Assembly (NCBI GenBank): GCA_009103225.1
Contig: RHPI01003389.1
Coordinates: 956,864 to 1,020,863, forward strand
Length of the DNA stretch: 64,000 bases
Reading direction: 5' to 3'
Origin: Chlorokybus atmophyticus
Lineage: Eukaryota > Plantae > Mesostigma and Chlorokybus algae
Made by a program: the position numbers and the translations under genes. The notes beneath the pieces are model-generated. The model ran no database searches and was not told the DNA's origin. It was given only the letters and a program-made list of their open reading frames with translations. Shown here piece by piece: positions 6,330-50,559 of this stretch; the stretch's first letter is position 1; every line of letters begins with the position of its first letter.

Positions 6330-7555
6330 ACGATAAAGGCCTATAGGGTGGCTTGTGCACGCTTTTGATCAACTCCACACGGTGATCAACGCTCCGTGAG
6401 GGTGGCAGACCAGCTGGAAGTCCGTCCGCCGTGATATCTTAGTGTTCCTAAACAAGTTTGCGCACCTCGGGGTCCATCGTGGCTGTCTCGCTGCAGTCAC
6501 TCAGCTTCGGTGCTGACTTTGCTGTACTCTGACGCACCACACACAACCATGCAGCCTTCGCTTTTTGTGGGGATAGCAGCTTCCTCAATTGCACATAGGA
6601 GACTTGAGCAAAGAGCTACTTCCAACTGATTGCGCGTGCGGGGCCTTTCCGGTGCTTGTATCCCCTTGCAGGTGCTCAACACACGTGCGCATACTTGCCT
6701 TAGCGAAGTCGCACGCAGCTATGACAAAGCCCTTCTTGCTTTCCTCGCAAGTGGTTTTCCACTTCGATGGAGCACGCGTGTAGACCTAAAATGGACTCTT
6801 CATCGTTTCCGTTGATGGTGAGCACACGCTTCTTCCAATCGATAGATGGGTTATGTTGCCACAGCCACAGTAGTCCATAAATTTCATCAAACCGGTTCCG
6901 TAGGGTGATGCAGCAGAAACGCATATTCTCCTTCAACTTCCCCATGTGAACACACAACTCCTCGATTAAGAACGCAGCAACGGTACCTCCAGAGGGTGGT
7001 TCCCCATCAGCGAGTTTTACGTTTCCTCCTCGTAATGGTGAGAGCCAACCGTAGCGCCGTGCAACCTCCTCACTCATGAAGTTGCTATTTGCTCCACTAT
7101 CAACCATAAGGTTGCAACTCCCTCCATTGTCCTCGATCATCGCAAATGCGTGCTTGAAGCTTAACGTACTTTGTTGTCTCCTCGCTTGCATAACTTACCA
7201 CCATGGGCCTGTTCAAAGCCACCTCCATTTTCATTCTTCCTTGGTTGCGATGTCACAATCTTCATTTCTGCGTGAGGATCCCCCTCATCCCCAGCAGTAG
7301 CCTCCTTACCTACTGGGGGAGTCGTTTCCCTGATCCTCCACGCCATCTTCCTCCATTGCGTTGATGCGTCGTGCGCGATATGTGTTGCCAGCTGATGCAG
7401 ACGTTTGCGTGCGCCGCTTCGAGCAATTGAACGCTAAATGTTCTATCAAACCGCACACGTAACACTTGCGCACGCTGCTACCTGCCTCACCACGTCCACC
7501 GTGCTTCGCCACGCCGTTACGCGTGTATACGGCACCCACCTCCATTGGTGATGGT
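6330..7555 (-). pseudogene. Gypsy gag zinc knuckle, aspartic protease and spacer remnant
   Basis: PSPMEVG motif, CCHC knuckle CYVCGLIEHLAFNC, protease LMVDSGANSNF and IYGLLWLWQHNPSIDW. Confidence 0.88.
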
Positions 7556-7739
7556 CGTCGCAATATGTTTTCCCTGCCGGCCGACAAAATATTGGCAACG
7601 GCCGTGCACCTGAGGACACTAATCTAGACTGTCGTGGCTCAGTCCACCTATAATCTTAATACAGGGACCTAATAGTAACTTTCGTTACTATCAGGCCCTT
7701 TTTGTTACATTTTAGTCTTCAACGGTTGACTATGCCTAA

Positions 7740-8030
7740 TTAACAGGCGCCCGTTAATTACCTATCAGGCCTTTACAAGTGACTTTGTATAATTTACAGG
7801 CACCTGTTAATTACACATCATGCCTTACTAGGTGACTACAACTAATCAACAGGCACCTGTAAGTTATACATCAGGCCTTAACAGGTGACTACACCTAATT
7901 AGCAGGCACTTGCAAATTACACATCAGTCTTACTTTTGTGACTCAGCCTATGTGACAGGCACCTGCAGGTTACACACCAGTCCAGCGCAGGCGACTAAGC
8001 CTAATTCACAAGCACCAACTAGGTAATTAT
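7740..8030 (+). repeat. Subterminal tandem repeat, about 53-bp period, 5-6 degenerate units
   Basis: CAGGCACCTGT..TTACACATCAGGCCTTA..GGTGACT units start at 7744, 7797, 7850, about 7903 and about 7956. Mirrored at about 59900-60200. Confidence 0.85.
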
Positions 8031-8348
8031 CGACAAAATAAGGCATTCTTTAACAACTGAAGGTGATTGATGCCTAACTGTCGTCATATGTATTTGCATA
8101 GCTTGACTACACGCGACTGTCACTGACTGCTAGCATTGTTATGTGCCTGTGCTGTGTACATGTACCTGAAATGTGTACAATGTCTCTCAGTCACGTGCCA
8201 AGGCTTGTAGCTCGATTATGTGACTTGAATGCTGTTCTGTCGTATATCATAGGGATGCAAGTATTGACATGCATGGGCATAATGACGATCGAGTGAGCTG
8301 GTTTAAGATGCACAACACTCAGTCACAAGAGCCTTGTAGCTATGTACA

Positions 8349-10202
8349 CTACCAGCTAAACGGACTACCAACTGCGCTACAGCTCCTCTCCATCATCGCT
8401 TTGCTCGTCATCATGGAACAAAGCACCACGCGCGGGGCCTGTGGAGGAGACGCCGGAGCTTGCTCTTCCTCCTTAAACGGTTGTGCCAGCCAATTAAATG
8501 CCGCTTCTGCCTCAGCGAGCGGGTCACGAGCTGCTGTCTCTTGCGGCCGGCGCCGATTGGGATCTTTCAGGTATTCAACACAAAATGCAGTGCGGCGTTT
8601 CACAAGGGTGAATGGCTGGAGGGCTGCGTACCGTTGCCTCATCTCCCGCTTCATTGACATGATTATGGTGTTGATTTCGCTGAGGTACTCTTCATGTGTG
8701 TCTATGCTGGCAGCTAGGAGAGGGTCTCCATCCTTGCCCTTTAAGATGCGCTCCACCTGCGTAGTTTACAGGCATGTCTTAGTGGCATCGAAAGCCACTA
8801 TTCACTGCAACGCGCCTGCAAGCCTGTAGTTTGGGGCTACAGCATTCCTGAATGCTAATGACGGTATTCAGAGTGCTCACCGTAAGCAACAGGTATGCAA
8901 GGTGGTTAACTGTCAGCTGCCGGCGACCAGGTGTAGTGACGGCGTAAGACCAGCATTGCACGATCATTTGCCAGATTATGGGATTGCCCCATGCATGGAT
9001 GTATCTCCTCCGCTCCGGGTCTGTAGTGTCGGTCACCTCAAATCTCCGCCATGACTTGCCTGCGACAGTCATACCAACAAGGCATTAGCCACGATATGGA
9101 TAAATCAAGTTGAGCCTGCACCAGGCTAAAATAGTGCCATTGACTTACTTTGGAGCGCGTTGCGCATCTGGGCTTTTTGGGTCTCGAGGTCCATTAGGGC
9201 GTCGATGTGCCTGATTGAATCGGTTACAATAGGCGAGATGAGTACGTGTGTATGGAGGCTGAGTAAGAAGGCAGTCTTGCATAGCAGACATGGTGGTGAG
9301 GGACCCAACTGACTTGCGCTTGTTGCTGTTAAATAGTGTTCACTTGTGCTCCTTCTCGAGGACATGCTTGATGTTGGTGACGTTCTCAGACCGGACCTGC
9401 GTAGCTTTCTTCAAGGCGACACTCCAGTGGAAGGGGCACTTCTTGGGAGTCCAATACACCTCATAGAAGTTGGCCGCATCGGCCTCGTCGTCATGGTCGA
9501 AGCCAACTACCTATCACGGGCTGGTTGGTCAGTGTCACGGTGCAGTGCGGTCATGAAGCATTCACAGCACCTGACACATGATGTTACGAATAGTGTCCTT
9601 CTTGGGATAAACGTGGCTCTTTACCCAGTGGCCGTTTATGATTTCAACGACGGCATCTCGCAAATGCTGTCCACAGAAGAACAATCCGTTACACACATAC
9701 ACACAGTGTCACAGTGTCACACAGTGCTTACCTCGTTGCCAATCTTCCACTTGCTTGGGGAAGGGTTGCTGACGGCCGAGGTTGCCACGTCACGACCAAA
9801 TGCGTTTGGGTTGGGGGTTTCAATCGACCCTCTGCAAGCACAACCACATGAGTCATGCTGCAAGCCATGAAAGATGCAACCCTCACAGTTGCACAAGAAG
9901 AACAATGTGCACAGTGTGTCCAGAACGCATGCAGTGAGTCACTGTGCTAGTCATGAAAGAAGCAAGCATCCAACTTATAAGTCGAGCAAGAAGCAACGTG
10001 CACAGTGCATCAAGAACGCATGCAGTCTAGCTTGCCCTTGCGACTGCGGTGTCAGGTGGAGTTGTTGTGATGTGCTGGGCGTTAGCGCGGGGTCTTGCTG
10101 CGATTGGTTGGCGACGGTTGCCTAGTTGAACACTGGGGGCAATGTGGACAACTGGCGCCGACCTCCACGACGAGGTGCACCTACGGATGGACCACGAGGC
10201 AT
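8349..10202 (-). pseudogene. Spliced cargo gene of unknown function, with stops and frameshifts
   Basis: ATG at 10202 (MPRGPSVG...). GT-AG-bounded exons encode protein-like text (HLRDAVVEIINGHWVKSHVYP, FYEVYWTPKKCPFHW, ERILKGKDGDPLL). No recognisable family. Confidence 0.5.
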
Positions 10203-10389
10203 CTCTTCAATTGATAGTCGGGTGCCGCCTGTTTAGTTGATAGTGGCGCTGCCGCCTCCAACGCTGCCGCCGCCGGTTGGCCCGCCCGAATCTACGAGGC
10301 GCGAAAACGAAAATAAAATAAGGCGGTTTTGAACGTCTAGAGTCCCGCACTAGAGTCGCACTTGTAGTGCGTTCTTGCTCCTATGGTTG

Positions 10390-10540
10390 ATGGTACGAAT
10401 TATGCATTCGTGCCATCCATGCTTCGTACAACCATTGGTAATCACGGTTGTGTCGTAACATTTATGGTACGACAGAGGCATCTCTTGTCCAACCCGAGCC
10501 ATTGCCGTACAATGGCTCTGTCGTACCATCCATGGTACGA
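10390..10540. promoter_or_regulatory. Cluster of four ATGGTACGA motifs in a divergent intergenic region
   Basis: Exact 9-mers at 10390, 10464, 10521 (reverse complement) and 10532, plus CCGTACAA at 10505. Confidence 0.55.
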
Positions 10541-10639
10541 AAGAGGCATTGCTCGATCAGCCCTAATGGGAGTTAGCGTGCACTTACCCAAACACGCTTC
10601 ATTAAAGGCCGGATGATGGCACGCAAGGGCACCAGGTCG

Positions 10640-13600
10640 ATGACGGGTCGAATGTCAGGCTTGATGGGCCTGGGTTCGACTATGAGGCGGAGGACCAGGA
10701 GTCGAAGCCGGCGGCGGCGGCGGCGGCGGCGTGGCACATCTTGCGAGAAGTTGTGGTCGTAAGAGTTCAAGCAGCGAAGCCAACTACTACCGGTCGCCAC
10801 GTCATGGATCATGGCAGGCGTCAGCAATGGGGCTGTCCAACATGCATCACGAACATTGGACAAACCAGCAGGCAAGCCATTAATGACCATCTTCACACAG
10901 AGAGCTGCTTGGTGGCTCGCTTTCTGCAACAAGGAGTGGATCAGGAGCTGCAGTCCTTGGAGCCCCTTGTCAGAACCGTGCGGACCCAATTGCGGCTGTG
11001 GGAACAAGCACAAAGCAATGCAGAAGTACGCTCAACAATCACATGCATTTCCTTGCAAGAGCAATTTGTTTTTCAGCGCACTCCATGTGATATATGTAGC
11101 GTGGCTGCAGGCCTCCACTATTCACCCATACCCACCCTACAGTCAAGCCGACATTGCGGAAGCCAGAGCAGATAGACAGAGCTGGGCGGCGGTATGTTGT
11201 TGCCACTCTCGCTGTGCATGTTGACTGCATGCACCTCCAATGCATGCCTACCTTTACATGCTAGGATGTGCGTGAGCATGCGAAATCGCGCGCGCGTGCC
11301 GAACGAAGTAGGCCGGGTTTGAGCACAGGAGAGCGTGGCCATTCGTCCGGCATTCAACCAATCGTGCATCAACAAGCAATGACGCAGTCCATGCAATCAT
11401 TCGTGCATGAACCATTAATGCCGCAGGTGATTGTTCAAAGCAACCAACTGATAACGGTGTGACGCAGTTGACTATTGCAATTGCAGTGTCGCAAGCATGC
11501 AGCTAACCCACATGTGATTGGTTAACAGCACCACAGTGCACTAGGTCCTGTTGGAGCTCATATGCAAGCCTGGATTCAATCCCATCAACTGGTCCTTCAA
11601 TCCCACTTGCTGATGGGCGCGGCGGCAATGCAGCATCAGTTTAACATGCATGTTGGCCTATTGAATCCCGACATGTCCAATGGGGCAGTGGCGCATGATG
11701 TGCCCATGGCTCGCAAGCTCCGTGACGAGTCTGCGATCGAGGGTGGCGGGGAGAGTGCACCCAATACCATCTTGTCAGCCCCCATGGCTTCCCCTGCTCC
11801 ATGCAGCCCACGGGCCATTGAGGTAAGTCGCTGTCTTTTATGCTCGTGCCTTGGTAACAATGCGTCAGGCACTGCATAAGCTTATATTTCCTTTGCAACA
11901 TTGTGAGCCATCTTATCCTGGGTCCTGTATACAGCCCCCCCCTTGCTGCATGCACAAGTGGTCTCACCTGCAGCTCCTGCTCCCCTCGCAGCCAGAGCGC
12001 AACCACCTTCCGCGGCACCAGTCCTTCATGCACTGCCATCTCCTCCACGAGCAGCACCGGTGATTGCGGGGCAACAATCCTTCTTGCCGCCACCGGCGAG
12101 ACCACAGCACAATGCAACAACCGATGTGGCTTCTGCACCTACCTTACCCCACCCGCTGCAAGTTGAAGCCGGCAGTCTGCCCCAAACTCAGGTACTTTAT
12201 CAGTCACTGTGACTCTTGCCGTCCACACGCATACGGCCATCAATCATGCTAGGTGGCCAGCTCGCCTCATGGGACCACTTCAATGCGCCAACGGATGGTA
12301 ATTGCTTCTACCATTGTGTATTTCGCGCCAGGCCATCCATAGCGCAAAGTGTCCTGGATGATCACAAGTGCCCCAGCTCGAGCAGATTTTGGGCCATGCT
12401 GGACACCATGGACGACGACGGCAGGGGGCACACTCTCCGCAAAATCACCGCCAAGGCTGTCGATGCAGGCGTGGCGAGCAGAATCTTAGACTTCTGCAGA
12501 GCCACTGGTGCCGCGGGAGAGATGGCACAATATTACGACAAATTGCCTGCGACCATGTTGGCTGATATCATTTGCAACATTGACCTAGCCATGGCCAAGG
12601 TGCGACAGATCGTGCGGAGAAAAGATGTGTACGTCGAGCACCTGCAGATGACCATGTTTGCCAACAAGCTGGGCTTGTTGATTGGCTGCGTGACCGTTCA
12701 GCGCGAGCATGGGGAGTGGGTGCCACGGCCCGGCAGCGCAGTTTGGGTTGGAACTACAGAAGCCCCCAACTCAGTCCTGGTGGTGGGCAACACTGCTCCT
12801 AATGAGCTAGAAGCACACTTTTGGCTCCTCAAGCCTGCAAGCACCGAACAGTGGTCGTGGCCTATGCATGAAGTGCCACCGGAGGTAATACACCTGATCG
12901 GAGAGTGGCGGAATGGCGTTGCCAATTCCCCGCTACCACCGGCTGTGACTTAGAGTGCTGCGCCAATGCCTCAGGCCTCGCATTCGTGTGCTAGGCAAGA
13001 AGTAGCCGAGTGTTCTGCACATCCTGCCTCCCCTCAACCACAGCCACATGCTCGCAATTCAGCACCTCCCTTCCTGCCGCGGAGACTCACTTGCCACCGC
13101 ACTCTGACCATCCGGAGGCATTTCCATCAAGAAGCAGCTGTAGCTCGCCCTCTCCCTCTAAGCTTGCCACATTGATCCCAGCCTGTCTTGTTGGTAAAGA
13201 GATTGATAGAGGTGTCCTGAAAGCTGCGCTGAAAGACAAAAGCTTCATGCTCGACCTCATGAAGCAACATGAGGTTGTGGAGGAACGGGAGGCAACCAAC
13301 AAGCGCAAGGCTATGGAGCAAGAAGATAACGCCTTATCTCCTCTGAGTGACAGTGCCACGGAGAGCGCCTGCCAAGATGTGCAGGTTGACAAGAAAAAGA
13401 AGAAGAAGGTTGTTGGAACAAAAGACGCTGACAGGACCAAAAAAGGAAAGGTGAGGCATCGTTACAACGTTAGAAGAAGCACAGCGCCTTGAAGCCTCAC
13501 TGGGGCTGACTGTGTGTCCTAAGTAGGCACAGGCGGCTTTACAGCGTCAAGTGGCTGCTCAGCATCGTCCAGAGAGACAGCCGGTGCGGCACGAGCTGCC

Positions 13601-14561
13601 CAAGCTCAAAGCACCGACGCGCAGACGCTTTGAGGGGCTGACTCGTAGTGCAAAGAAGTTGATCGCCCTACAATACGCCCAAGACGCGCTGCATCACCGC
13701 ATGCGGCATGCCTCGAGGTGGGTGACGAAAGTATGCAATAAGTGGGAGCAAACGCGGAGAGTGCGGTCTAAACAGACCTCTGGGGATTGGCCGTGGTTGG
13801 AACCCATACACAATATGGCCATCCATAGTACGTTGTTGCCCCTCGCCGTCCTCGATATGATGGTGTTGCTGCCGCAGCAACCCGGCAATGTGCAAGAGCT
13901 ATCTGCGGAGCAGAACTTCGACCTGCTGCAGCAGATGTACCTGTCGATATCGACTGATGCGGGTCGAGATGTGTGCCACTACCTGAGCAAACATACTGGG
14001 TGGCAAGTAAAACCATTCGAGCTGTACTTGGCATGCTTTGGTTGGCAGTGGCTGTATGTCATACGGCACGTCGAGCTTATTCTGTGGAAGCTCGAAGAAA
14101 ATGACGATGCGGGGGAGTACACGAGTGACGACAGCCATGTCGAGGGCCTGGATGAACGCATGCTGGACGAGACCGCCAAGACCAGCAGGTGGTGTATGGC
14201 GGCAGATGGGCAACAGGTGATCAAGCAGGCAGTGGAGCGTTATGCCGCGCCATTCAGGTGGGAGTCGCTACGCTTGCAACGCGATAACAGAGTTTGGTGG
14301 CAGAGGCAGCTTGCACACCCGCGTGCACCATGTGTGCTAATTTGTCGCATTGAAGAGCCCCCCCCCCCCCCCCCCCCCCNGGAGACGCCCTGTTGCAAGA
14401 AAGCGATGTGCCATGTCTGCATCATAGCACATCAGAAGACTGTGGCAAATAAATCAAAGAATCTATAAGCATGTCCCTTTTGCAAGCAACCTCACCCGTT
14501 TTGGTCGCCACGCCTGATGCAAGACGCCAACGTGTCGGCGGTGATTTGGCCCCCGCCTTGA
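10640..14561 (+). CDS. Multi-exon cargo gene: N-terminal C2HC zinc finger, Pro/Ala-rich linker, OTU deubiquitinase, C-terminal RING-like finger (this copy has premature stops)
   Basis: CPTC...HLHTESC at the N-terminus. OTU Cys box DGNCFYHC (Cys 12303-12305) and His box EAHFWLL (His 12816-12818). Phase-0 GT-AG introns 12885-12994 and 13451-13526 join the OTU exon in frame to the RING exon (CVLIC...PCCKKAMCHVC...CPFC). Stops at 12210 and 14466. The 5' exon structure is uncertain. Confidence 0.7.
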
Positions 14562-14951
14562 TGCCAGTTGCATGTATTGTAGTTTTGTGTTGGCTTCCTG
14601 TGAACCATGTAGATACATGTATGGTTGCAGCATGGTGCATGGTGCACCAGAGATCTGCTGTTGTCAGAAGCATTGGATGTACATGTGTATGATGACTGCC
14701 CGGCGCATGAGTCAGTGCATGGCTTGCATACCTCGCTGGTTTAGAGCGTGGTTGACAGCAACAAACTCGGACAACGCTCTGGGTTCCATGGCATGATAGC
14801 ACAGTATTACTCTACGATCGTGGTAGTATGCGAGTATCCTTGTACTGTAGTATCATTAACAGATGGAGTACCATTCATGTTGATGCAGTATCATGCATGG
14901 TACTGCAATAGCGTATAAGGTACAGTCGTGCTTCACTTGAAGTTTGACCCA

Positions 14952-14999
14952 TTTAGGGTTCGTAAGATGGCAACCCTAAATTGATGCCCATACCCTAAA
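14952..14999. promoter_or_regulatory. Three telo-box-like (AACCCTAAA/TTTAGGGTT) motifs upstream of the Cys-rich/MTase genes
   Basis: At 14952, 14972 and 14992. Conserved in copy 2 at about 59158-59205. Confidence 0.4.
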
Positions 15000-15042
15000 G
15001 TCTCGCTCAGTTTGTGGGCAGCCGTGCCGATTCCTATTTTGC

Positions 15043-15618
15043 ATGATGTCGGCGGCAGCAGTTGAATCCCCCTCACCTAGGAGACCATGCTTGGTGTGCC
15101 CACAATGCAATGCGTACGTATGTGCCAATGGCCGTAGGCAGCAAATGCGAGCACACTTAACCGAATGCCAGCGAGTGCAGACAGTGTGCCACGGTTTTAG
15201 TGCTGCTTGCTGGCATTACACCACACACAATGTCGACGTGTTTGGCTGCCGCCTCGGCCAAGATCTGTGCAAGGAACCCGAGTTTTTCCATTGCGTGCAG
15301 TGCGTGTGCAAATCGTGCTCGCGCTCATGCTTCGAGTGGCGAGGGGAACCCATGCGCTTCTTCACATGGACAACACCGGAACATGTGGTTAGTGGACAGG
15401 TGGTAGATGCTGTGGAGGTAATTTGGCAGAGTGGACCGCGACGTATCACTGCATGTTATGTTGGGCGTATGCTTATATCATGCATGTTGAAGCTGTTGTC
15501 GCATTCGAAGCAGTCTTCCACGGTGTGGGCGTGGGCAGTTCCATCCCCTGGCCGCTGTAGAGGAGGCAGACCATCAACCGTTCGACAGCGCACTGCATTG
15601 GCTGCGGAACGCAGTTAA
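15043..15618 (+). CDS. Cys-rich zinc-binding protein, 191 aa
   Basis: CPQC...HLTEC finger plus a second Cys cluster (CVQCVCKSCSRSC). The ORF is intact and the same length in the copy at 58539-59114. Confidence 0.6.
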   Translation: MMSAAAVESPSPRRPCLVCPQCNAYVCANGRRQQMRAHLTECQRVQTVCHGFSAACWHYTTHNVDVFGCRLGQDLCKEPEFFHCVQCVCKSCSRSCFEWRGEPMRFFTWTTPEHVVSGQVVDAVEVIWQSGPRRITACYVGRMLISCMLKLLSHSKQSSTVWAWAVPSPGRCRGGRPSTVRQRTALAAERS

Positions 15619-15619
15619 G

Positions 15620-16753
15620 TTGGGATGCGAGCAGCTGATTGGTGTGAGTGTCATGGTGCATGGGCCGCTGGATGGGGAATGGTATGCGGGCGTTGTGGAA
15701 TCATTGAAGCAAGCGTTAGGTCAGCATCACTTCGTGGCGTGCGAGATTGAGGACGCATCATATATGCATGGAGCAATGGAAAATGTCTTTGCAGGGCAGC
15801 ACCGTATAGTATTCGATGATGGTGATCGACCACAAACCATCAACTTCAAAGGGCACAACGTATTCGCGTACACATCAGTTGACGGGGCACGCCATGTTCT
15901 GCGCGTCGGAGGGGAGAACGTCAGTCGCACAGTAAGCCCGGAAGGCATCATTGTTAGTCCCTGGCCAGCACCACGGCTAGCCTTGACCACATACACGCCA
16001 TCTGACAACATGCTTGGACGCACACGCAGACCAAGGGCACTCGACCTATTCTGCGGCGGTGGCAGTGCCAGTGGCGGTCTATACCACGCAGGCTTTGACG
16101 TGACCGGGATGGACATAAGTCCCTCCTCTGAGTACCCGCTGCCCTTCATACACCGCGATGTGTGCACCCTGAGTGCAGGAGAGCTGAGCGAGGACGAGCT
16201 CATCTGAGCCAGTCCACCATGCCAGGCCTGTTCAGGTGCTATCCCGGCACCTCAACGGGCGGCACATGGCACATCCTGGAGACATCAGGTATGATACCGC
16301 TCGTCCAACGTCTGCTGCTTGCAAGCCAGGTCAAGTTTGTGATTGAGAATGTGCTAGGAGCAGCTTCCTCATTCAGACCCAATCTGTCCCTTTGTGGCAC
16401 GATGTTTGGCCTATCAACTTTCCGACACCGTCTGTTTGAGACACAGACAGTGGTAGCTACCCCACCAGCACGCTGCTCGCACGCGGGCAAGGCAGTTGGA
16501 CTGCTATCGTCGCACCTGTTCGCTAGCGCGAAGAAGACAATCGTGACATCAAATGCGCTACAGCAGATGTACCCGGTTTATGGCCTTCCAAGCACCAGGG
16601 GCGGCATTGCTGCGTGGCAAACAGCGCTGGGAGTGCCATGGACGGCCGTTTCCATAGCGAATGCAGTTCCTCCCGCAATGGCGGAGTGCATAGGGCGTCT
16701 CATGCTTGAAACAATGGATATGCGCTGTGACTACCCTCCTGTGTTATGGAACT
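15620..16753 (+). pseudogene. Tudor domain fused to a C5-cytosine DNA methyltransferase (copy 1, disrupted)
   Basis: Tudor (LIGVSVMVH.PLDGEWYAGVVES...GQHRIVFDDGD after removing intron 15720-15794). MTase motif I LDLFCGGG, motif IV ASPPCQ, motif VI FVIENV, LCGTMFGL..RHRLFE, and motif X ANAVPP. TGG to TGA at 16205, a 1-bp frameshift near 16290, and the last codons displaced to 21664-21674 by the Copia. Confidence 0.88.
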
Positions 16754-17219
16754 TGTTGAAGGACTAGCATGCACATGTAGCTGAGGCAAGCATGGATACA
16801 CACGGACAGAGCTACCGCCACCAGAGCATACACAAGTCACATCACATTCATCTATTACAAGTTGTCCGCTGGTTCTTATACCAGCCAGTTACACACACGT
16901 CTACGTTTGCAAGCACTGCGTAAGCTATACTCAGCCTTTTGACGCGCTCTAAGCTGCGTTGTCTTTCTCACAACCAGAGCTTTCCAACAAGCTCTTACAC
17001 GCCAAATATGAGTAAGTATACGCGGAGATACAAAGCAGTTAGTAAGGCTCCAGTCTGGAGTCCGGAGTCTGGTCCGACGATGCCATCTTGCTAAGTCCGG
17101 ACCTAGTGCTCGTCCTTACGACCTTCTACTCCTGTGTGGAGGGTCGATGCTGATCGTATGTAGGAATACTCTCAACACTCCCACGCGAGCAGCTTGACCT
17201 CCAACGCTTGCTCCTGTAG

Positions 17220-20200
17220 TCAAACACAGATGCCAAGTCCTGCACAACAAGTCTTGAACTTGAGTGGTGACAATGGCTTTGTCATGAAGTCCGCCAGCAT
17301 GCCCTCAGTGTTGCAGTACTGGAACTCCACCTCCTTCCTTGTGACTCTGTCACGCACAAAGTGATGCATGACATCAATGTGCTTCGTCCTTGCCGAGGCG
17401 ATAGGGTGCTTCAACAACTTGATGGCTCCTTGGTTGTCACAGTTGATGACGATGCACGCCATGGGGTGCTCCAAGTCTGCCATGAGCTTGCGAAGCCAGA
17501 GTGCCTCCTTCACTGCTGCTGCCGCTGCCATGTACTCAGCCTCTGATGTAGATGCTGCTGTTGTTGGCTGCAGCCTGCTGTTCCAGCTCACCACGCCTCC
17601 GTTCAGCTTGAAGACGTAGCCTGTAGTGGACCTCCTGCTGTTGAGGTCACCAGCAAAGTCCGAGTCGCAGTAGCCCTCCAACTCAGTGCTCCCGCTCCCA
17701 AACTTGATGCCAACTGTTGCGCTCCCAGCAACATAGCGTAGTACTCCCTTTGCTGCTCTCCAGTGCTCCATGCTCGGTGCAGACATGTAGCGAGCAAGTA
17801 CTCCCACAGCATGTGCAACATCGGGACGTGTGCACACTGCCAGATAGAGCATGCTGCCTACCAGCTCACCATATGGATACTGAGCCTTGTCGAGTACCTC
17901 CTCATCCTTTGCCTTGATGAGGGCAGTGCCAAGTGCCAACGGTGTGGTCTTGGTCTTCGCTTCAGTGAGCCCAAACTTGGTGACGAGTCTTCTCACCATC
18001 TGCTCCTGACTGATCTTGATTGTGCGAGCCGCCCTGTCGCGCTCAATCACCATGCCAAGGAACCACTTGGCCTCTCCAAGATCACGAACTGAGAATGCTT
18101 GCTGTAGAGCAAGTTTCGTCTCCTGCAGGTGGTGCACCTGCCTGGCGGTGATGATGATATCATCAACATACACGAGCAGCCAGACCTTGTTGTCTGCATG
18201 GATGAAGAGCCCAGGGTCTGCAGAGGATGCGGTGAAGCCAAGTGCCTCCAGCTCCTTGGTGAGCTTGATGTGCCACATACGCGGTGCCTGTCGCAGCCCG
18301 TACAGTGCCTTGATCAGCTTGCACGCTGTGCCTCTCTCCCCTTCTTCATATCCAGGTGGTTGCTCGATGAAGATCTCCTCCTCCAGCTCTCCGTAGAGGA
18401 AGGCAGTCTTCACATCCAGGTGATGCAGCTCTAGGTCTTCAGCAGCAACCATAGCTAGCAGTGCACGGAAGGTGGTATGCTTACTTGCAGGTGCAAACAC
18501 TTCGTTGAAGTCCACACCTTCCTGCTGCAAGAAGCCCTTTGCCACCAGTCTTGCCTTGTAGCGCTCAATGTTGCCCTGACCATCACGCTTCACCTTGAAG
18601 ACCCATTTCACTGGAATGGTCTTCACTCCTTGCGGTAACTGCTCCAGTGACCAAGTGTTGTTGGCATGGAGTGACGCAATCTCCTCGTCCATAGCACGCT
18701 GCCATTGCTCCGCATCTGGTGCTAACAATGCCTCCTCGTAGGTGCTTGGCTCCTCATTCTGCACACTGGCGACGTGTGCCTTGTGTAGGAAGTCAGGTGC
18801 CTTTCTCTCCCTCACTGGGTATCTCCGAGCTGCGTGCTCCTGCTGCAGGTGCGACTGCTTGTCTGCTACAGTGGAGTCCTGCTCACCCTTATCGTCGATG
18901 ATGGCCTTGCCTGTAGCCTCCACTGTTTCAGGATGCTCCGGCTGTGCTTCATCTTCAGGAAAGAAGCCTGCTTCTGGTTGTGATAATCCCTCGTGGAAAA
19001 CCACCTCTCTGCTCACGATGATCTTCTGAGTGTCCTCGAGCAAGATCCTGTAAGCCTTGGAACCCGGTTCATAGCCAACGAAGATGCCCTTCTTGCTGAC
19101 CGGCTCCAGCTTGTGCCTGAGCTGTTTAGGCACTAGTGCATATGCCGTGCATCCAAACACACGCATACCACTCACATCTGGTGTGGCTCCATAGAAGTGC
19201 TCCCACGGAGTCTTCTGCTCTGAGCTCACCGGAGACCTGTTGCGGATGTAGTTGGCAGTGAGTACCGCCTCCTTCCACAAACTGTCTTCCATCTTTGTGT
19301 CGTTGAGCATGGCTCGAACACGCTCCAAGAGTGTCCTGTTGAGGCGTTCAGCTGCTCCATTCTGCTGCGGGGTGTAGGGTGCCGTTGTCTCGTGGCGTAT
19401 GCCCTTGCTGGCGAAGAACTCCTTCAACTCCTTGTTGATGTACTCCCCTCCTCGATCACTCCTCATTGCCTTCATCTTGTTGCCAGACTGGGTCTCCAAC
19501 AAGGCCACAACTGTGCGCACAGCTCCAGCAACTTCTGACTTGAGCGTCAATGGAAAGATGATGGACAGCTTGCTGTAGTCGTCGAGGAATGTAGCAAAGT
19601 ACCTGGCCCCTCCCTTCGCCACAATGCGCATAGGGCCACAGACATCCATGTGCACAAGCTCGCAAGGATGCTGACTGCTAGAAGAGGATGATGGGAATGG
19701 CATAGCATGCTGCTTTGCAACCAGGCATGGTTCACAAAGTGCACCTGATGCATTCTTGAGTTCTTCTGTGCTGAGATGGATGCCCTTGACCATCTTCTCA
19801 GCGACAAGGCGAGTGAGGTTGACGTAGCTGAGATGCCCGAACCTTCGATGCCACAATGTTGGCGACTCCTTGTCCTTCACCACCATGGCTTGAATGTCTC
19901 TGTCTTGAGGCTGCTCCACGTGGTAGAGCCCTCCCGGATCAGCGATTCCAACCATGTGCACGACCCCATCAAGGATGACTGAGCAGCCACCCTTCCGAAA
20001 TAGGATCTCCGCGCCTAAGCGCTCCGCAACCCTCACAGAGAATAGACTCGCAATAGCCTTAGGAACATGCAGGACGTTGCGTAACAACACCTCGCGTAGT
20101 GTGTTACCAACCTTGCACTGGAGTCGTACGTTGCCAACTCCCTCAGCCACCAGTACTTCGCCACCGAAGCCCGCCACCTTGATTGTGGACGTCAGCTTCC

Positions 20201-21161
20201 TGTAGCCCTCCATCACCTCCTTGTTTGGTGTGAGATGACGATCGCAGCCAGAGTCCACCACCCAGAAAGCTGTGCCCGCCCTCGAACTGGATGCAGTGAA
20301 GGCGACATGTTTCTCCTTGTGTTGGTGCTCGTTGCCGCTGTTGCTGGTGCTTGCTCTAGGTTGCCCCTGTTGTTTCTTCCTACAGTCCTTCACAATGTGC
20401 CCCTTCCAACCACACCAGTGGCATGTGAGGTCTTTGTGACGAGGATTGCCTGGCTTGTTGCCCTTGTACTTCTCTTCATGGTTGCTCTTCTTTGCGTGCT
20501 TGCCGGTGTAGAAGGCGACGGCATCCGCTTGCTCGTCCTTCTTCACAACCCTCTGCTCCACGGTGAGCAGCTTCGGTAGCACATCGTCCAACGTCAACTC
20601 CGATGATGACGTCTCCAGCAGGGTTGCGACGACCTCGTACTCTGCTGGTAGCCCTGCAACAATGGCCAGCACTACCTCCGTCTCCCCCATGTTGTGGCCG
20701 ACGTTGATGAGGTCCGCCCACAGCTCTCTCGCGCGCGCAACATACTTTGTGATGGGTTCTGCTGCCTCCTTCCTGAGTGCGCTGAGCTGCTTGCGTAGAT
20801 GCAACTTTCTGGCATTGTTCTTGGCTCTGAAAACGGCTGATAGCTTTTCCCAAGCTTGTCTACCATCTTCACATGCAGTGAGCATGGGAAAGTGATGCGG
20901 TTTGCTGTTCAACACAAGCAAAGAGTGTGCTTCTGCTGAATGCTCTGACCACACAGTGTTCGCTCCTGGTGTTGGTGGTGGTGCCTTTGGATCAACGTAC
21001 TTCCACACCTTCTTGTGGATGAGCAAGGCCTTCATCTCCACGCACCATGTGTTGTAGTTGTCGGTGTCCAGCTTTGCAATCTGCCCCTTGTCGTAGGTCG
21101 CCTCCATTTCTGTCGAGCCTGCCTTTCTTGCAGTTGACACCCAAGGCTCTGCTACCAACAA
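17220..21161 (-). CDS. Copia Gag-Pol polyprotein (Gag, CCHC, PR, IN, RT, RNase H), 1313 aa
   Basis: CHWCGWKGHIVKDC, WVVDSGCDRH, LVHMDVCGP, PQQNGAAER, YKARLVAKG, LLVYVDD, YCDSDFAG, RTKHIDV. The true start is probably the later Met (MEATYDK). Confidence 0.97.
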   Translation of the reverse strand: MLVAEPWVSTARKAGSTEMEATYDKGQIAKLDTDNYNTWCVEMKALLIHKKVWKYVDPKAPPPTPGANTVWSEHSAEAHSLLVLNSKPHHFPMLTACEDGRQAWEKLSAVFRAKNNARKLHLRKQLSALRKEAAEPITKYVARARELWADLINVGHNMGETEVVLAIVAGLPAEYEVVATLLETSSSELTLDDVLPKLLTVEQRVVKKDEQADAVAFYTGKHAKKSNHEEKYKGNKPGNPRHKDLTCHWCGWKGHIVKDCRKKQQGQPRASTSNSGNEHQHKEKHVAFTASSSRAGTAFWVVDSGCDRHLTPNKEVMEGYRKLTSTIKVAGFGGEVLVAEGVGNVRLQCKVGNTLREVLLRNVLHVPKAIASLFSVRVAERLGAEILFRKGGCSVILDGVVHMVGIADPGGLYHVEQPQDRDIQAMVVKDKESPTLWHRRFGHLSYVNLTRLVAEKMVKGIHLSTEELKNASGALCEPCLVAKQHAMPFPSSSSSSQHPCELVHMDVCGPMRIVAKGGARYFATFLDDYSKLSIIFPLTLKSEVAGAVRTVVALLETQSGNKMKAMRSDRGGEYINKELKEFFASKGIRHETTAPYTPQQNGAAERLNRTLLERVRAMLNDTKMEDSLWKEAVLTANYIRNRSPVSSEQKTPWEHFYGATPDVSGMRVFGCTAYALVPKQLRHKLEPVSKKGIFVGYEPGSKAYRILLEDTQKIIVSREVVFHEGLSQPEAGFFPEDEAQPEHPETVEATGKAIIDDKGEQDSTVADKQSHLQQEHAARRYPVRERKAPDFLHKAHVASVQNEEPSTYEEALLAPDAEQWQRAMDEEIASLHANNTWSLEQLPQGVKTIPVKWVFKVKRDGQGNIERYKARLVAKGFLQQEGVDFNEVFAPASKHTTFRALLAMVAAEDLELHHLDVKTAFLYGELEEEIFIEQPPGYEEGERGTACKLIKALYGLRQAPRMWHIKLTKELEALGFTASSADPGLFIHADNKVWLLVYVDDIIITARQVHHLQETKLALQQAFSVRDLGEAKWFLGMVIERDRAARTIKISQEQMVRRLVTKFGLTEAKTKTTPLALGTALIKAKDEEVLDKAQYPYGELVGSMLYLAVCTRPDVAHAVGVLARYMSAPSMEHWRAAKGVLRYVAGSATVGIKFGSGSTELEGYCDSDFAGDLNSRRSTTGYVFKLNGGVVSWNSRLQPTTAASTSEAEYMAAAAAVKEALWLRKLMADLEHPMACIVINCDNQGAIKLLKHPIASARTKHIDVMHHFVRDRVTRKEVEFQYCNTEGMLADFMTKPLSPLKFKTCCAGLGICV

Positions 21162-21221
21162 GCTACCGTAGTGTAGAACTACTATGCACTCAAGCTAGTC
21201 TCACACTCCTCAAGCGTAGTG

Positions 21222-21234
21222 TGGGCCCATAACC
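21222..21234 (-). other. Primer binding site GGTTATGGGCCCA (half-tRNAiMet type)
   Basis: Abuts the 5' LTR and is complementary to the anticodon arm of initiator tRNA-Met. The same PBS precedes the LTRs at 50181 and 56113. Confidence 0.85.
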
Positions 21235-21877
21235 TGTTGAAGGACTAGCATGCACATGTAGCTGAGGCAAGCATGGATACACACGGACAGAGCTACCGCC
21301 ACCAGAGCATACACAAGTCACATCACATTCATCTATTACAAGTTGTCCGCTGGTTCTTATACCAGCCAGTTACACACACGTCTACGTTTGCAAGCACTGC
21401 GTAAGCTATACTCAGCCTTTTGACGCGCTCTAAGCTGCGTTGTCTTTCTCACAACCAGAGCTTTCCAACAAGCTCTTACACGCCAAATATGAGTAAGTAT
21501 ACGCGGAGATACAAAGCAGTTAGTAAGGCTCCAGTCTGGAGTCCGGAGTCTGGTCCGACGATGCCATCTTGCTAAGTCCGGACCTAGTGCTCGTCCTTAC
21601 GACCTTCTACTCCTGTGTGGAGGGTCGATGCTGATCGTATGTAGGAATACTCTCAACAGAACTATGAGGCTTGAGTGTGGTGCATTGTATTAATGCTTAA
21701 TGCCACACGGCGGACTGATTGTTGAATGTTGCATGGCACATTCAATTGTGGTGACAGTTGTGCAGTGACGGCTGCCCGGTATTGTACACGTCCACATGCA
21801 AAAGTCTTAGCATACGATTAGCAATGCCTAACCGACTGATATGCTCCAAACTCAGAGTAGTGAGACAAGTACATGTG

Positions 21878-24800
21878 TCACATGGAAGTGCAGTGAACGT
21901 TCACCCAATACTTGCCCTCTTGTACACGGGCGCTGTCCTTGTCAAACATGGGGAGCAGCTGGACAATGCCTTTTACTTGCTCCAGAGTCACGACATCGAG
22001 ATGTGGACCGCCTCGACACTTTTCCCATTCCATAGCGATGCACTTTGTGTCGCTCGTCACATCCAGCTTCGTGTACCAGCGGACAAACATGACCTCCTTC
22101 CAAACACGCTCGCCGCTACCACCCCACACCACCACGCGCAAAAAAAGGAGTGCCTGAGCCCACCGCGTCACTTTCATACCGTCCTCATCACCTTCCAACT
22201 CAGGTGTAGAGAACCAAGGCCGCCCATGGAACATCCCAGTTGCGCGCGCCATGCTGACTCTTGATGTCATGTACACCGCTGCGCCTCCATTCACCACGCG
22301 AACAGCACGCCACCCGTCGGGCAACTCCAGTTGTTCCCTCCTCAACCAGCTGTCCAGGGTGGCAGGCAGCTTGTCGGCAAATGGAGTCTTCAAGGCGACT
22401 TGGCGGCTATGCGCAGATCCGCTCCGATACAGGCTGGACTCCCTCCTTGTCAGCACATCCATCCGTAGCAACTTGTCCGTCTTCTTCATGACATTACAGC
22501 ACTGCTGCCGCGCCTGCGCCATGACCGAGCGCATCTCGGGATCCACCATGCCATCCTCTCTCACATATTCCGCACAGCTCCATGCCTTCAGGATATGTGC
22601 TTGGTAGTCCCGGTTGTTGCCACCACGCGCCCACCGTTTGATATTTTGGGCGTGCGTCTGCTCCATGCGGTTGGCGCTGAACCAATCTGGGTGTCCACTG
22701 CTGACAATTGCCGGCCCAAAATGAGTGAGCTGATGCATCTTCTCGATCTTCCAACCTGACTTCTGTGCAGAATATGACGACAGTAGCGGATGCAACACTG
22801 CAGCTTTAATGGCAGCCAGCTCGTTGTCGGCTGTGGTCAGGGTCTCTCTTTTGTGTTCATGCGCCTTGAGCAACATCTTGTTCCACTGGGCAAGCGATGC
22901 GGCAGCAATAGTGAAGAAATCGTTGCCCTCACTGTCGAGCAGCAAACCGTCTGCGAGGACCGGCAGCAGCTGCAGCACCGCAACTTTCTCCACCACCTGA
23001 AAGGAGTGGTTGGACAGGAAGAAATCTACTGTGCTTGTGGGTGCCTTGAAGTGCAAAACCCGCAGAGTTGCCTTGCATGTATTCAGCCTGTGCACATCTG
23101 CTTGTGAGCACGTGTCGTTGGCTTTTGTGTTCAACACAAAAGCAACACTAAAGCCGTGCCTGGCCTGCAGAATTTGTCTCGTGGATGGACGCATTCGTTC
23201 CTTCACGGCGTCATACACAGCAGCAAGCAGGTGGTCAATGATGCCTCCCAGCACATGCATAGCGTCAGGGGTAAGACGAGAGTAGCAGTCAGCTCCCGGC
23301 ACCCGCGACTGTCGCCAACCCCACAGAGCATTCTGTCGCCAAACCACATTAGCTGGTTTCACGGAAAGCCATTCGTCTTCACGAATGCCGATAAGTTGAC
23401 CATTACCTCCTCGACATGCATGGAGTGCTGCTCTTTGAAAGCCTTGGCTGTCTGGCGTGCATTCCTAACACCGCTATGCAGGTCCGCCCGCAGCTGACGT
23501 ATTGCTGGTGTGTAGAAGGCCTCTGTTCTCAATTCCCGGTCCTCATCCATCTTCAACAGATTTGATTTGGTGACAAGACAAACATCGCAAGAATGTCATG
23601 ATTGGTTGCCCGACACAGTGCGTGCGAGTGTGGCAGTCTCCTACAACACGACAAACTCAAATGTTCTATTGACAACATCCTCCATGACCTGTTTGCTGGC
23701 AGGCTGCATCCGGTTACAACCATGCATGCCCACTACCTGCAAATCGCTGATATAGTTGGCAAGCGCGGGAAACACACGACGCTCGATGCCATTCGGGTCG
23801 ATGAGCTGCGAACCTTCTCAACTCGCCCGCTTCACATCCCCTAACACTACATTCAAAGCGTCATGAAAAATTTCACGTTTTCGAATGGAGAACGATTTCT
23901 AACCCTGCGCCCCGGTGGGATGCTCGGCCACTGCGTGAACCACCGGCAGAAGCGCTATCATAACAACCCCTATGTTGCTAGCATACATGTCCCAACTGTA
24001 GTTGGCAAGCGATGGCATCAAAAGGTAGCCAGAGCGCTTGCCCGCGCTGTCCAGCGTGGTCTTGTCACTGTACAGAATGGCAGGCGCCAAGTAGGACGCT
24101 TCCCCCACCTCTCTCCTCAAATCCATCTCCACATCCTTCCACCAATCGCCCGTGGAAGGATGGCCAAAGCTGTGCTCGTCACCACTGTAGATTGAAGCCA
24201 TTGGCGGCATGTGGATTGCCATACAACCGCGCGAGCCATACCTACTCCGACTAAGAGCATTACTTACTATGCTGGCCTCAGAATAGATACTGCATCGATA
24301 CTGCATTATGTACTGCATGTCACAGACCTTGGCCGGCATATATGTGACGCTGATGTCCTGATCCTCAGGGTCTCCAGGCTTGCGCAGATCAGCCGTCACG
24401 TAGTTCTGATACGGCAGCACACTCGCATGTGCATATGTGACATGGCTCTGATGGTTGAAGCACATGCACCGCACACCGTGAACACACCTCAGACTGAGAG
24501 AAATCAATTGTGGTCCGGAGGTAGCTGGCCACATGCACACCGGTCTCCCACTGGAGCTCTTCCGTCAGGAAGTGTGCATTTCGGATGCACTTGATGATCC
24601 GCCCCATGTCGGAGGCCGACAAGCCTTGGCCGTTGTTGCACTGCACGAATACCACTGCAAGAGCATGCTCCGAGCCATACCACCTGGATTCCAACACGTG
24701 CGAAGGGCTGCCTCCACTTCCATGTTGGCGTGCCACAGGTTTCTCAGGCACACGCACACATCGAAAGCCCTCGTTCACTTCCTCCTCCTCCTGTTGCTGC

Positions 24801-25009
24801 TGTGCGTGTATCTCCTGGAGGAATCCTTCAGCATCAAGCATGTGCGCCTCGATCGAACTCCCCGGTTGAACATGACCCGCATCGTACCGTAATGGACGCT
24901 GGTCGACATACAGCTTGATCTGCTTGCACACCCTGCTGCTAATAATGTGCATGCAGACCGAGCTGCGTGTGGCGAAGCGCCTGTGGCAATACGAACAAAG
25001 GACTCCCAT
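21878..25009 (-). CDS. Plavaka-type (CMC/CACTA-related) DDE transposase, spliced and partly decayed
   Basis: N-terminal CSYC...H....C finger. FGHPSTGDWW...PAILYSDKTTLDSAGKRSGY (first Asp), NYISDLQ (second Asp), PDAMHVLGG, and KMHQLTHF...G....SANRMEQTHAQNIK (catalytic Glu region). Confidence 0.8.
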
Positions 25010-25172
25010 ATCTCACTACTAACGTCGACACAGGTGTCGCCAATGTAACCTGCATCATATCCAGCAACACGCACACCCGCCGCCGCCGCCGCCGCCGCCA
25101 CCGCCACCGCCACCGCCACCGCTACCCTTGCATGCCAGAGGTGGGAAACTTGGCCGCCATTCACTGGCTCCG

Positions 25173-25224
25173 TCGTACCATTATTATGGTACGATCAAGC
25201 CATTGCACGTCCAGGGTGAGTCTC

Positions 25225-25267
<43 letters not shown>

Positions 25268-25360
25268 TGATTGAACCGTTTCAATGGTACGAAGATGCCT
25301 TTGCCAAAAGGTACCATTGAAATGGTATCTTTGTACAGTGGCAATGGCAGTTCGTACCAT
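25173..25360. promoter_or_regulatory. Second cluster of four ATGGTACGA motifs around a (TA)n tract, between divergent genes
   Basis: Exact 9-mers at 25173 (reverse complement), 25186, 25284 and 25352 (reverse complement). (TA)n at about 25228-25265. Confidence 0.55.
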
Positions 25361-25439
25361 TGACAACTCTGGCATGTCAGTCCCCCTGCGCATGAAAACA
25401 CCATTGATAGCTCCGCCAAGCTATGCCCTTATAGGGGCG

Positions 25440-26375
25440 TGATGCCGAGGGTATGTGGCGTTTGGAGGATCGTTGGCGGCGCTGCCAGGGGCGTAGTGGG
25501 CATTGTGGTCGAGGTCCGAGATGAATTCCATGTTCGCACAGGCCGGGCAGGGTGCCGGAGGGGTGTCCTCGGTGTCAAACCCCACCATGCCTACCAAGGG
25601 CACAGCCAATGACGACAGTGGCTCGGGCAATATCTTACACGGCTCCCCCTTCGAGTGGGCAAAGGCACACCACAATACTGCCTCTAAAAAAATCCGACCC
25701 ACCAGCAGCTGCGACCATGGCGACATGATTGAAGGGACCAAACAAGACTGGCATAACCAAGGTGGGTTACGATGCACTGTCAATGCCATATGCTAGGGTT
25801 CTTTTATCTTGCACATGCACAGCCTCAAATATCTTGCAATTGACATACACTGTCAATACCACATACACACCCTCATGCACAACCTCCAGTGTCATGGACA
25901 TGAACAGCATGACCAATCTCGCAAATGCACAGCCTATTTCTACTTGCAAGAGCTCACAAGTCGCAAAAGAGAAGCTGCGCAGTACCACGAACGGGTAATC
26001 CATGACCTAGTTTAATGTTCCCAGCGGTATTTAAGCAGTATGCTTGCAGATTGCCATGTTGGTCAGAGTGAACCGAGAGCAGCGCGGCAGACTGACTGTC
26101 TGCCTGGCGGAGTGCAACAAAGCGAAAGACGAGGTAAGCATGTGTATGCTGATGGGCTAGTCCTCTGGCAGAACGCCACTCTTACAGCATTACCAAATGC
26201 AGGTGGTCACTCTCAAAGCGACCATCAAGCGCATGCGCGTGCACGGCGAGGCGCTAACATTTATGCTGAAGGACGAAGTAGCCACTGTACTGTCAGCGAG
26301 CGCGGCAGCAGATGAAGATGACTCCGGCGTTGAAGCAGAAGACTTGTCGGAGGAGGAACAGGAGGAGGGGGTTTG
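25440..26375 (+). CDS. Spliced cargo gene of unknown function with an acidic C-terminus
   Basis: Exon-like ORF 25503-25790 and a last exon reading ...DEDDSGVEAEDLSEEEQEEGV*. The exon structure is uncertain. Confidence 0.4.
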
Positions 26376-26939
26376 AGGAGGAGTTCTGAGGCAGGCACCA
26401 CGGGTTGATAAGTTGCGCATGAGTCCAACAGCTATATTCAATGTTATAGGGTAGTTTCATGCGCAAGTCGGCTGCTCAGTTGCAAGTGGACATACTCTCA
26501 CCACTGCCGGTACATTGTATATATCGTGGGCTTATAGGTGCAAGACCAAACAATCAGTCCAAGGTTTGTACAAGCTGCATGGCATGTTAGTGTTGGCTTA
26601 CGGCAAGAATTGCCAACTTTTGTCAAACGGCAAGGGTCACATATTAACAGCAGTGTAACGGCAAACAAACTGCCGGCTATTGCTGTCAGCTGTCCGTAAC
26701 TACCGGCTAATGGCCATCTGTGCACATTGACTAAAGGGTAACTGGTTGACAACTCTCGGCCGGTTAATGCCACTGACAACCACTTTCGGCCCGCGGCCGT
26801 CTGCGTCAGTCCACTTAAGCCAACGGCAAACCCAACAGTAAAAAAGTAATATTTCAGGCAGCGACAGGCAGGCTCAGGCAGGCTCAGGCACCAGTCAGTC
26901 CCTCAGTCCTTAGTCAGTCATCGTGAAAAATTTGCGATG

Positions 26940-50425: not shown

Positions 50426-50559
50426 AAATATACTTTGGCAGTATATCTAACGCTGCTATATATGTAGATACCAGATAGACTTTAAGTCGCAGGGCACTGT
50501 GCATACATGCCTGTCGCATCACCTGCCTCAGACCCCTGCCCATTGCACCTGGTTGATAG

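Follow-up and report, generated by a model that had tools for sequence, protein, structure and literature searches.

We suggest that positions 7556-26939 of the window, a stretch of 64,000 nucleotides of the alga Chlorokybus atmophyticus (contig RHPI01003389.1, positions 956,864 to 1,020,863), hold an inactivated copy of a multi-copy family of autonomous Plavaka-type (CMC-related) DNA transposons of about 14.5 kb, which carry a cytosine methylase unit and an OTU-like unit beside the transposase. We put the probability of this reading at about 0.85. When the Copia retrotransposon nested in the interval and the Copia target site duplication (TSD) are subtracted, a single DNA transposon of 14,475 bp is left, in agreement with the size given by an earlier reading made from the letters only (the sequence-only reading). 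The cargo can be assigned to one mobile unit, since both ends, the TSD, a non-autonomous relative and a deletion derivative were found together. The copy itself is dead and cannot act. Stops or frameshifts specific to this copy interrupt the transposase, the methylase and the RING-like open reading frame (ORF), and the Copia sits in the 3' end of the methylase gene. The toolkit proposed earlier is overstated for this copy.

The ends of the element are 5'-CGTCGCAA ... TTGCGATG-3'. At the left end (7556) the repeat boundary is sharp, and comparison of the window with itself shows this sequence again at the end of the inverted second copy (60374) and at the start of a small element (5691). No partner for the right end at 26939 was present in the first self-comparison; it surfaced only with a sensitive search, in which the last 72 bp match 6252-6329 at 83% and the similarity ceases exactly at the terminus. 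The small element, 639 bp long, has both ends and its own AC duplication, thus independently confirming the ends of the big element and its 2-bp TSD (GT on both sides). The terminal inverted repeat (TIR) is short and imperfect, CGTCGCAAT versus CATCGCAAA. The termini read CGTCG..CGATG in the big element and CGTCG..TGACG in the 639-bp relative, which is near the PlavakaB consensus and not identical to it. Both ends have subterminal repeats, 53 bp x 4.8 at the left end and 10 bp x 3.7 at the right. The TIRs, the 2-bp duplication and the subterminal repeats had thus been recognised correctly from the letters. A further left end related to the family lies at 4596-5690, with 88% similarity over about 100 bp and the terminal bases altered to AATTGCAAT. 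It is followed by about 1.1 kb with ATGGTAC motifs, and no matching right end was found for it.

The host of the insertion is an old, minus-strand Ty3/gypsy element, which was hit in its gag region. LTR-like repeats (LTR, long terminal repeat) of this host at 749-1816 and 27830-28470 are 95-96% identical, and remnants of its protease, RNase H and integrase lie between 2.4 and 7.3 kb. When the element and one GT are removed in silico, a 120-codon ORF with PMEVGA and a CCHC zinc knuckle spans the junction. The claim that the TSD restores the gag frame of the host is thus right in that this ORF crosses the junction, but the conserved upstream gag is in a different frame. The restoration is consistent with the insertion and is not decisive, since the host gag is itself frameshifted and decayed.

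The family extends beyond the window. The stretch 10750-16749 (6,000 letters) was compared with DNA contigs of three sequencing runs from two studies, the samples of which are labelled as two different organisms. In run X1 263 contigs match the stretch at 90-100% identity and in run X2 104 do so, with all bins covered. The family is therefore multi-copy, with several to many diverged copies, and is not confined to this locus and its duplicate. Within the window a second copy lies inverted at 56197-60374. It lacks 8095-14329, including the OTU region, and is cut inside the transposase at a broken Copia LTR (56200). Its breakpoint falls inside the RING-like ORF, from which we conclude that copy 2 is a deletion derivative, that the long form is ancestral and that the OTU region belongs to the element. 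The opposite order, with 8095-14329 as a nested insertion in copy 1, was rejected, since the ORF that holds the breakpoint is continuous and coding-like. Internal-deletion derivatives are common for DNA transposons. Copy 2 had been said to have the same layout; it does share the left end, the methylase and the 3' part of the transposase, but the OTU region is gone and the transposase is cut.

The transposase is, on the evidence of profile alignments, full-length and of the Plavaka type. The exon at 23902-24540 matches PF18759 in Pfam with 36.7 bits (cut-off 26.3) and E 3.7e-9. For the 528-residue C-terminal ORF at 21881-23464 a word-indexed protein search was blank, which is weakly informative given its query-length limits; exhaustive HMMER gave 36 matches, the best at E 2e-14. 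In eight of the ten homologs scanned PF18759 lies directly upstream of the matched stretch, with E down to 1e-48. A local profile of 856 positions was built from ten full-length transposase homologs bearing PF18759. Positions 8-849 of it are colinear with 25006-21926, in blocks that switch frame. SDKT and ISD align to SDeT and aDy of the profile, and PDAMH aligns to pDilH; we infer the identity of the third catalytic residue. The splice signals between the aligned blocks are canonical, with a clean 99-nt GT..AG interval at 23739-23641, and the gene probably carries introns, this one included. Three in-frame stops (TAG at 23901, TGA at 23820 and TGA at 23598) fall inside aligned blocks, hence the transposase of this copy is broken. 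The Plavaka assignment of the sequence-only reading is thus borne out both by the PF18759 match and by the colinearity with Plavaka homologs over the full length.

On the opposite strand, tail to tail with the transposase, lies the methylase unit. By homology its catalytic part is securely identified as a C5 cytosine methyltransferase of a compact, phage-like type. In copy 2 the domain is in one 320-codon frame, and this ORF has 734 homologs with E values from 6e-43 for the best to 1e-26. Nearly all of them are PF00145 proteins of about 210 residues that are 35-41% identical to it. Motifs I, IV, VI and X are kept (FCGGG, SPPCQ, ENV and ANAVPP). When the two decayed copies in the window were scanned directly with Pfam, PF00145 did not match, so that membership in this family rests on transitive homology. 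In the 7556-26939 copy the gene is interrupted by TGA at 16205-16207, ahead of ASPPCQ, and by a 1-bp deletion after 16289, and its last four codons and stop are found at 21664-21674, past the nested Copia. In the other genomic copies, every overlapping contig of the three runs has G for A at 16207 (TGG) and one more A after 16289. An intron inside the catalytic domain was therefore rejected; the break is a TGG>TGA mutation plus the 1-bp deletion.

The best methylase homolog (P0001; Logan contig SRR9850958_131350, 1549-2583) is 36% identical, with E 6e-43 and PCF for PCQ in motif IV. Its gene is flanked by one for a PLOD-GT/2-oxoglutarate (2OG)-oxygenase and by an unknown one, and the contig is densely packed and possibly from a giant virus. 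Another homolog has small ORFs and three further methylase genes around it, a setting like that of a phage genome. A scan of viral contigs with the methylase as query found no relative.

Upstream of the catalytic domain a Tudor domain is probable. The best solved-structure match of this stretch (15491 frame) is the Tudor domain of Arabidopsis RDM15 (PDB 7de9, E 0.0077), and the match includes the strands GxxVxVxxPxDxxxYxGVVES and (I/V)xxDDGD. In a language-model search the stretch scores 0.85, with nine of the ten best matches in the Tudor/Agenet clan. A Pfam scan of it gave no match, and a single-sequence AlphaFold model was unusable. The first ORF of the unit is Cys-rich and starts from the ATG at 15043. 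The frame change between it and the Tudor ORF is common to copy 2, and no indel shows up there in the contigs of the other copies, hence one real intron is likely between the Cys-rich (Zn-rich) and the Tudor exons. Enumeration of GT-AG pairs gave many candidates, the best being 15418-15562. Of the proposed Tudor-C5 methyltransferase the enzyme is thus secure and the Tudor part probable. As for the introns that had been attributed to the passenger genes, GT-AG introns are plausible in the transposase and at the Zn-rich/Tudor junction, but the breaks in the methylase and in the RING-like ORF are mutations.

The other accessory unit is a string of plus-strand ORFs, one of which (12213-12950) probably encodes an OTU-like cysteine protease. 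In a language-model feature search it scores 0.93, with 79 of 100 matches in the OTU set, and its nearest clusters are of Nucleocytoviricota and haptophytes. Its Cys loop matches the OTU domains of nairoviruses in the PDB at E 0.18, and at 10 of 17 residues the loop is identical to that of a protein with an OTU profile, encoded on a viral contig of 114 kb. The scan of viral contigs gave two short Cys-loop matches only. No Pfam match was found for the ORF, and no homolog in a word-indexed protein search, the length limits of which make the blank weakly informative; the single-sequence AlphaFold model was again unusable. The per-position codon GC is coding-like across 12213-12950 and 13527-14465. 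Just ahead of the Cys loop, at 12227/12228, other genomic copies are longer by 85 bases, and at 13064 they have an additional C. The 7556-26939 copy thus carries further lesions of its own in the OTU unit, and the true gene model differs from the one visible in the window.

The unit ends in a Cys/His-rich motif, which we call RING-like only. Its ligands are spaced C-x3-C ... CC-x4-C-H-x-C ... C-x2-C, the His position is Lys and the canonical C3HC4 spacing is absent. The motif matches the RING of TRIM30 at E 0.028 and the Pfam RING at E 0.63, so the RING call is weak. Hence, of the OTU+RING protein of the sequence-only reading, the OTU part is probable on motifs and language-model features, but the RING part is doubtful. 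In the RING-like ORF a poly-C tract of about 22 bases (14350-14380) ends in N at 14380, where copy 2 reads CCACCCCCCCCAGCGGATGG; the tract is probably an assembly or sequencing weakness. In the left internal region (8095-10389) no ORF had a Pfam match, the codon GC pattern is weak or absent and the language-model recognition at 9337-9867 is low. The two unknown passenger genes that had been proposed thus find no backing.

All three units are preceded by inverted GTACCAT/ATGGTAC repeats, which ties the cargo to the transposase. The exact ATGGTACGA occurs nine times in the window, eight of them inside the element. The palindrome has the form TCGTACCAT-N2-5-ATGGTACGA, and it is also found at 5554-5609 in a neighbouring non-autonomous element. 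At 10523-10538 it reads GTACCAT-N2-ATGGTAC, for which the chance expectation in the window is 0.01 occurrences. At 14868-14903 the sequence is GTAGTACCATGCATGGTACTAC in other genomic copies (with a loose end at 14906). The repeats are candidates for a common regulatory sequence or for the binding site of a protein encoded by the element.

The viral look of the cargo raises the question of whether the methylase and OTU genes belong to an endogenised fragment of a giant virus or other foreign DNA, flanked by Plavaka ends by chance in a composite or nested arrangement. The neighbourhood of P0001, compact and giant-virus-like with its PLOD-GT/2OG-oxygenase gene, the nearest clusters of the OTU-like ORF and the Cys loop common to the protein of the 114-kb viral contig would all fit such an origin. 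However, the cargo lies between one left and one right end that are correctly oriented and flanked by a matching 2-bp TSD, in copy 2 the same left end is joined straight to the RING/methylase/transposase part, and 10750-16749 is covered by many variant contigs in all bins. Moreover, the same promoter palindromes stand ahead of the transposase and the cargo, and no viral hallmark gene was found among the scanned ORFs of the element, which also counts against a viral fragment. We therefore regard this explanation as very improbable. A viral origin of the cargo genes themselves is compatible also with the Plavaka family that we propose.

Several results weigh against the cargo-bearing transposon, or at least against a function of its cargo. 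The TIR measures no more than about 9 bp and has one mismatch. Sequence statistics are weak for the Tudor call (E 0.0077, pLDDT, the predicted local distance difference test score, 46), for the OTU call (E 0.18, no sequence homolog detected, pLDDT 35) and for the RING call (E 0.028). In the sequencing-run search with the 10750-16749 stretch no RNA run matched. The ratio of nonsynonymous to synonymous substitution rates (dN/dS) of the methylase between copy 1 and copy 2 is 1.04, which gives no sign of selection on the cargo. The latter two points, together with the lack of sequence homologs of the OTU-like ORF and the fact, seen in copy 2, that OTU-less derivatives arise, would be expected if the accessory block was passively captured DNA of Pack type or a viral fragment, amplified regardless of any function as non-functional passengers. 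We consider this improbable, although less so than the chance flanking of a viral fragment. The lesions are copy-specific and the sites concerned are undamaged in other copies, the ORFs run over their full length and have a coding-like codon GC pattern per position, every catalytic motif of the methylase is retained and each unit has its own upstream palindrome of the transposase type. A dN/dS near 1 is expected anyway between two dead copies, so that the value is uninformative on an active lineage. The excess of G>A/C>T changes in the 7556-26939 copy was also considered as a trace of methylation and deamination. This cause was rejected, as the changes are mostly non-CpG and the observed/expected CpG ratio in the element, 0.75, equals that of the whole window.

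Taking the Plavaka family with its methylase and OTU-like cargo as the preferred reading, we propose the following scheme for an active copy. A transposase of about 1000 residues, with a C2H2-like finger at the N-terminus, a catalytic core with SDKT, ISD and PDxxH and a long C-terminal domain, would act on the short CRTCGCAA inverted termini and the subterminal repeats and would leave 2-bp target duplications. From the opposite strand two accessory units would be expressed, one with the Cys-rich, Tudor-like and C5 methylase parts and the other OTU-like with the RING-like end. The GTACCAT/ATGGTAC repeats may provide their common regulation or be bound by a protein of the element. We infer that in the active ancestor the accessory proteins were functional and acted on chromatin to the benefit of the element. 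They may have combined a writer of 5-methylcytosine (5mC) aimed by a reader of histone marks with the editing of ubiquitin. A bolder version of this scheme, which we rate as rather unlikely, is that of an active lineage of the family in a basal streptophyte alga. There a Tudor domain of the H3K4me1 type would aim a virus-derived C5 methylase and would be joined by a deubiquitinase, both acquired from giant viruses or phages and placed under common palindromic control, and the transposon would write 5mC itself.

Table 1. Positions in the window of the Plavaka-type element, its parts and its relatives
Feature	Positions	Strand	Remarks
Non-autonomous relative, 639 bp	5691-6329	+	Left end 92% over 230 bp, right end 83% over 72 bp; TSD AC/AC
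Left TSD copy, GT	7554-7555		Partner GT at 26940-26941; direct sequence reading
Left TIR, CGTCGCAAT	7556-7564	+	Boundary common to 60374 (inverted) and 5691
Left subterminal tandem array, 53 bp x 4.8	7727-7980		Counterpart in copy 2: six units at 59924-60241
Left internal region with putative ORFs	8095-10389		Absent from copy 2
ATGGTACGA inverted-repeat cluster	10390-10540		Upstream of the OTU unit
Cargo unit 1, string of ORFs ending in a RING-like motif	10606-14561	+	Putative gene model
Probable OTU-like cysteine-protease ORF	12213-12950	+	Cys loop DGNCFYHC, His loop EAHF
Cys/His-rich RING-like C-terminus	14330-14561	+	CAA>TAA nonsense at 14466-14468; copy 2 reads CAA, motif complete
Inverted ATGGTAC/GTACCAT pair, 29 bp apart	14868-14903		14868-14874 and 14897-14903; some 140 bp ahead of the methylase gene
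Cargo unit 2, compact C5 DNA methyltransferase with a Cys-rich N-terminus and a Tudor-like domain	15043-16754	+	Tudor-like domain at about 15620-15940
Nested Copia LTR retrotransposon, not part of the element	16755-21658	-	TSD GAACT at 16750-16754 and 21659-21663
Plavaka-type transposase gene (predicted)	21878-25009	-	Tail to tail with the methylase gene
ATGGTACGA inverted-repeat cluster	25171-25360		Upstream of the transposase start
Right subterminal 10-bp repeats, TCAGGCAGGC x 3.7	26854-26890		Kept in the 5691-6329 element
Right TIR	26931-26939	-	Plus strand reads TTTGCGATG
Copy 2, inverted internal-deletion derivative	56197-60374	-	Equivalent of 7556-8094 joined to equivalent of 14330-22855
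Third family fragment	63473-64000	+	Equivalent to 10568-11094, 93.6% identical; adjoins an inverted Copia LTR piece and runs off the window

The nested Copia is an insertion of 4.9 kb, placed four codons ahead of the methylase stop. Its LTRs are direct repeats of 423-428 bp with 99.8% identity, and its gag-pol is intact (1313 aa, eight Pfam domains including RVT_2 at E 1e-70, gag and integrase). This Copia is very young and probably still active in the genome. A second copy of it, 95% identical to the first, lies at 51618-56200, with the 3' LTR broken at about position 92; the rest of that LTR (positions 92-428) is found inverted at 63132-63469, 7 kb off. These two pieces adjoin the equivalents of element positions 22855 and 10568, respectively. 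The layout looks like an inversion or rearrangement with the breakpoint in the LTR, or like an assembly error. Elsewhere in the window a Copia-type fragment at 48024-50426 has gag, a zinc knuckle and Pol_BBD between 244-bp direct repeats that are 95% identical, and a Helitron remnant at 44763-46611 has Helitron_like_N (E 5.5e-14) followed by a piece of AAA_30 helicase. The only clear host gene noticed in the window is that of an acyl-CoA oxidase at 38224-39958 on the minus strand, with long exons (Pfam ACOX_C_alpha1, E 7.5e-35).

To our knowledge, mobile elements with enzymes that act on DNA or chromatin marks are rare. The VANDAL anti-silencers are among the known examples. As to Plavaka, the view that the group is known mainly from fungi is out of date: it has been described across Archaeplastida, including streptophyte algae (PMC13519894), and our literature search also returned a report from a chlorophyte. 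Giant Plavaka elements of 17-19 kb make up a third of a red-algal genome and are known from Bostrychia and Chondrus (bioRxiv 10.1101/2025.02.11.637652). Their accessory genes PAG1-3 encode an N6-adenine methylase with SET (PAG2), ParB with a 2OG-oxygenase (PAG3) and one unknown protein (bioRxiv 10.1101/2025.02.11.637652). The element described here is similar to these giants in its Plavaka transposase, its very large size for a cut-and-paste element, its several accessory genes predicted to modify DNA or chromatin, its internal tandem and inverted repeat arrays and the mostly degenerate state of the copies. However, unlike the PAG genes, its cargo is a Tudor-like C5 methylase and an OTU-like/RING-like unit, and the host lineage is different. 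No match to PF01555, PF00856 or 2OG was found in any scanned ORF of the element, and the PAG cassette is set apart from it by its domain descriptions.

In fungi, the Plavaka survey of 2025 gives TSDs of 2-3 bp and termini of CATCA..TGATG for PlavakaB and TGT..ACA for PlavakaA (PMC12730594). The element shares with PlavakaB the transposase family and the TSD size; its termini are CGTCG..CGATG in place of CATCA..TGATG. Fungal PlavakaB and KDZ elements carry TET/JBP dioxygenases, according to Iyer et al. 2014 as cited in PMC12730594. The cargo enzyme acts on cytosine modification in these elements as well; however, it oxidises or removes 5mC and is a single accessory gene, with no Tudor or OTU reported there, whereas the writing of 5mC is predicted here.

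Retrotransposons (LINE, DIRS and LTR) carrying a DNA methyltransferase (DNMT) of the Dnmt3 type are known from Symbiodinium and Klebsormidium (PMC5890265), and the same paper cites DNMT-encoding DNA transposons in marine viruses. As in these retrotransposons, a mobile element encodes its own C5 methyltransferase, and Klebsormidium is likewise a streptophyte alga. Unlike theirs, which is a eukaryotic Dnmt3-type enzyme within the coding region of the element, the methylase here is a separate gene of a DNA transposon, and it would be an enzyme of the prokaryote/phage type of about 210 aa fused to a Tudor-like reader. Arabidopsis RDM15/PDS5C reads H3K4me1 by its Tudor domain (PDB 7DE9; PMC8184781). 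Compared to that domain, the putative reader described here carries about 25 additional residues between the matched strands, and it is fused to a methyltransferase, as RDM15 is not.

In our literature search no paper described Plavaka cargo that includes a C5 methylase, a Tudor fusion or an OTU gene, nor was a cargo of this kind, a C5 methylase fused to a probable reader together with a probable ubiquitin protease, found described for any DNA transposon. Large cargo-bearing Plavaka elements are already known from red algae and fungi, and it is the cargo combination that appears to be new. If the bolder version of the scheme is true, the 5mC placed on chosen chromatin would mark the copies of the element itself or blunt the silencing by the host, and this would be the first known case of cytosine methylation written by a DNA transposon. 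A 5mC writer with its reader would also give this transposase family the activity opposite to erasing, namely writing, in a group that stands close to the base of the line leading to land plants. Intact copies would make the methylation of a transposon written by itself testable.

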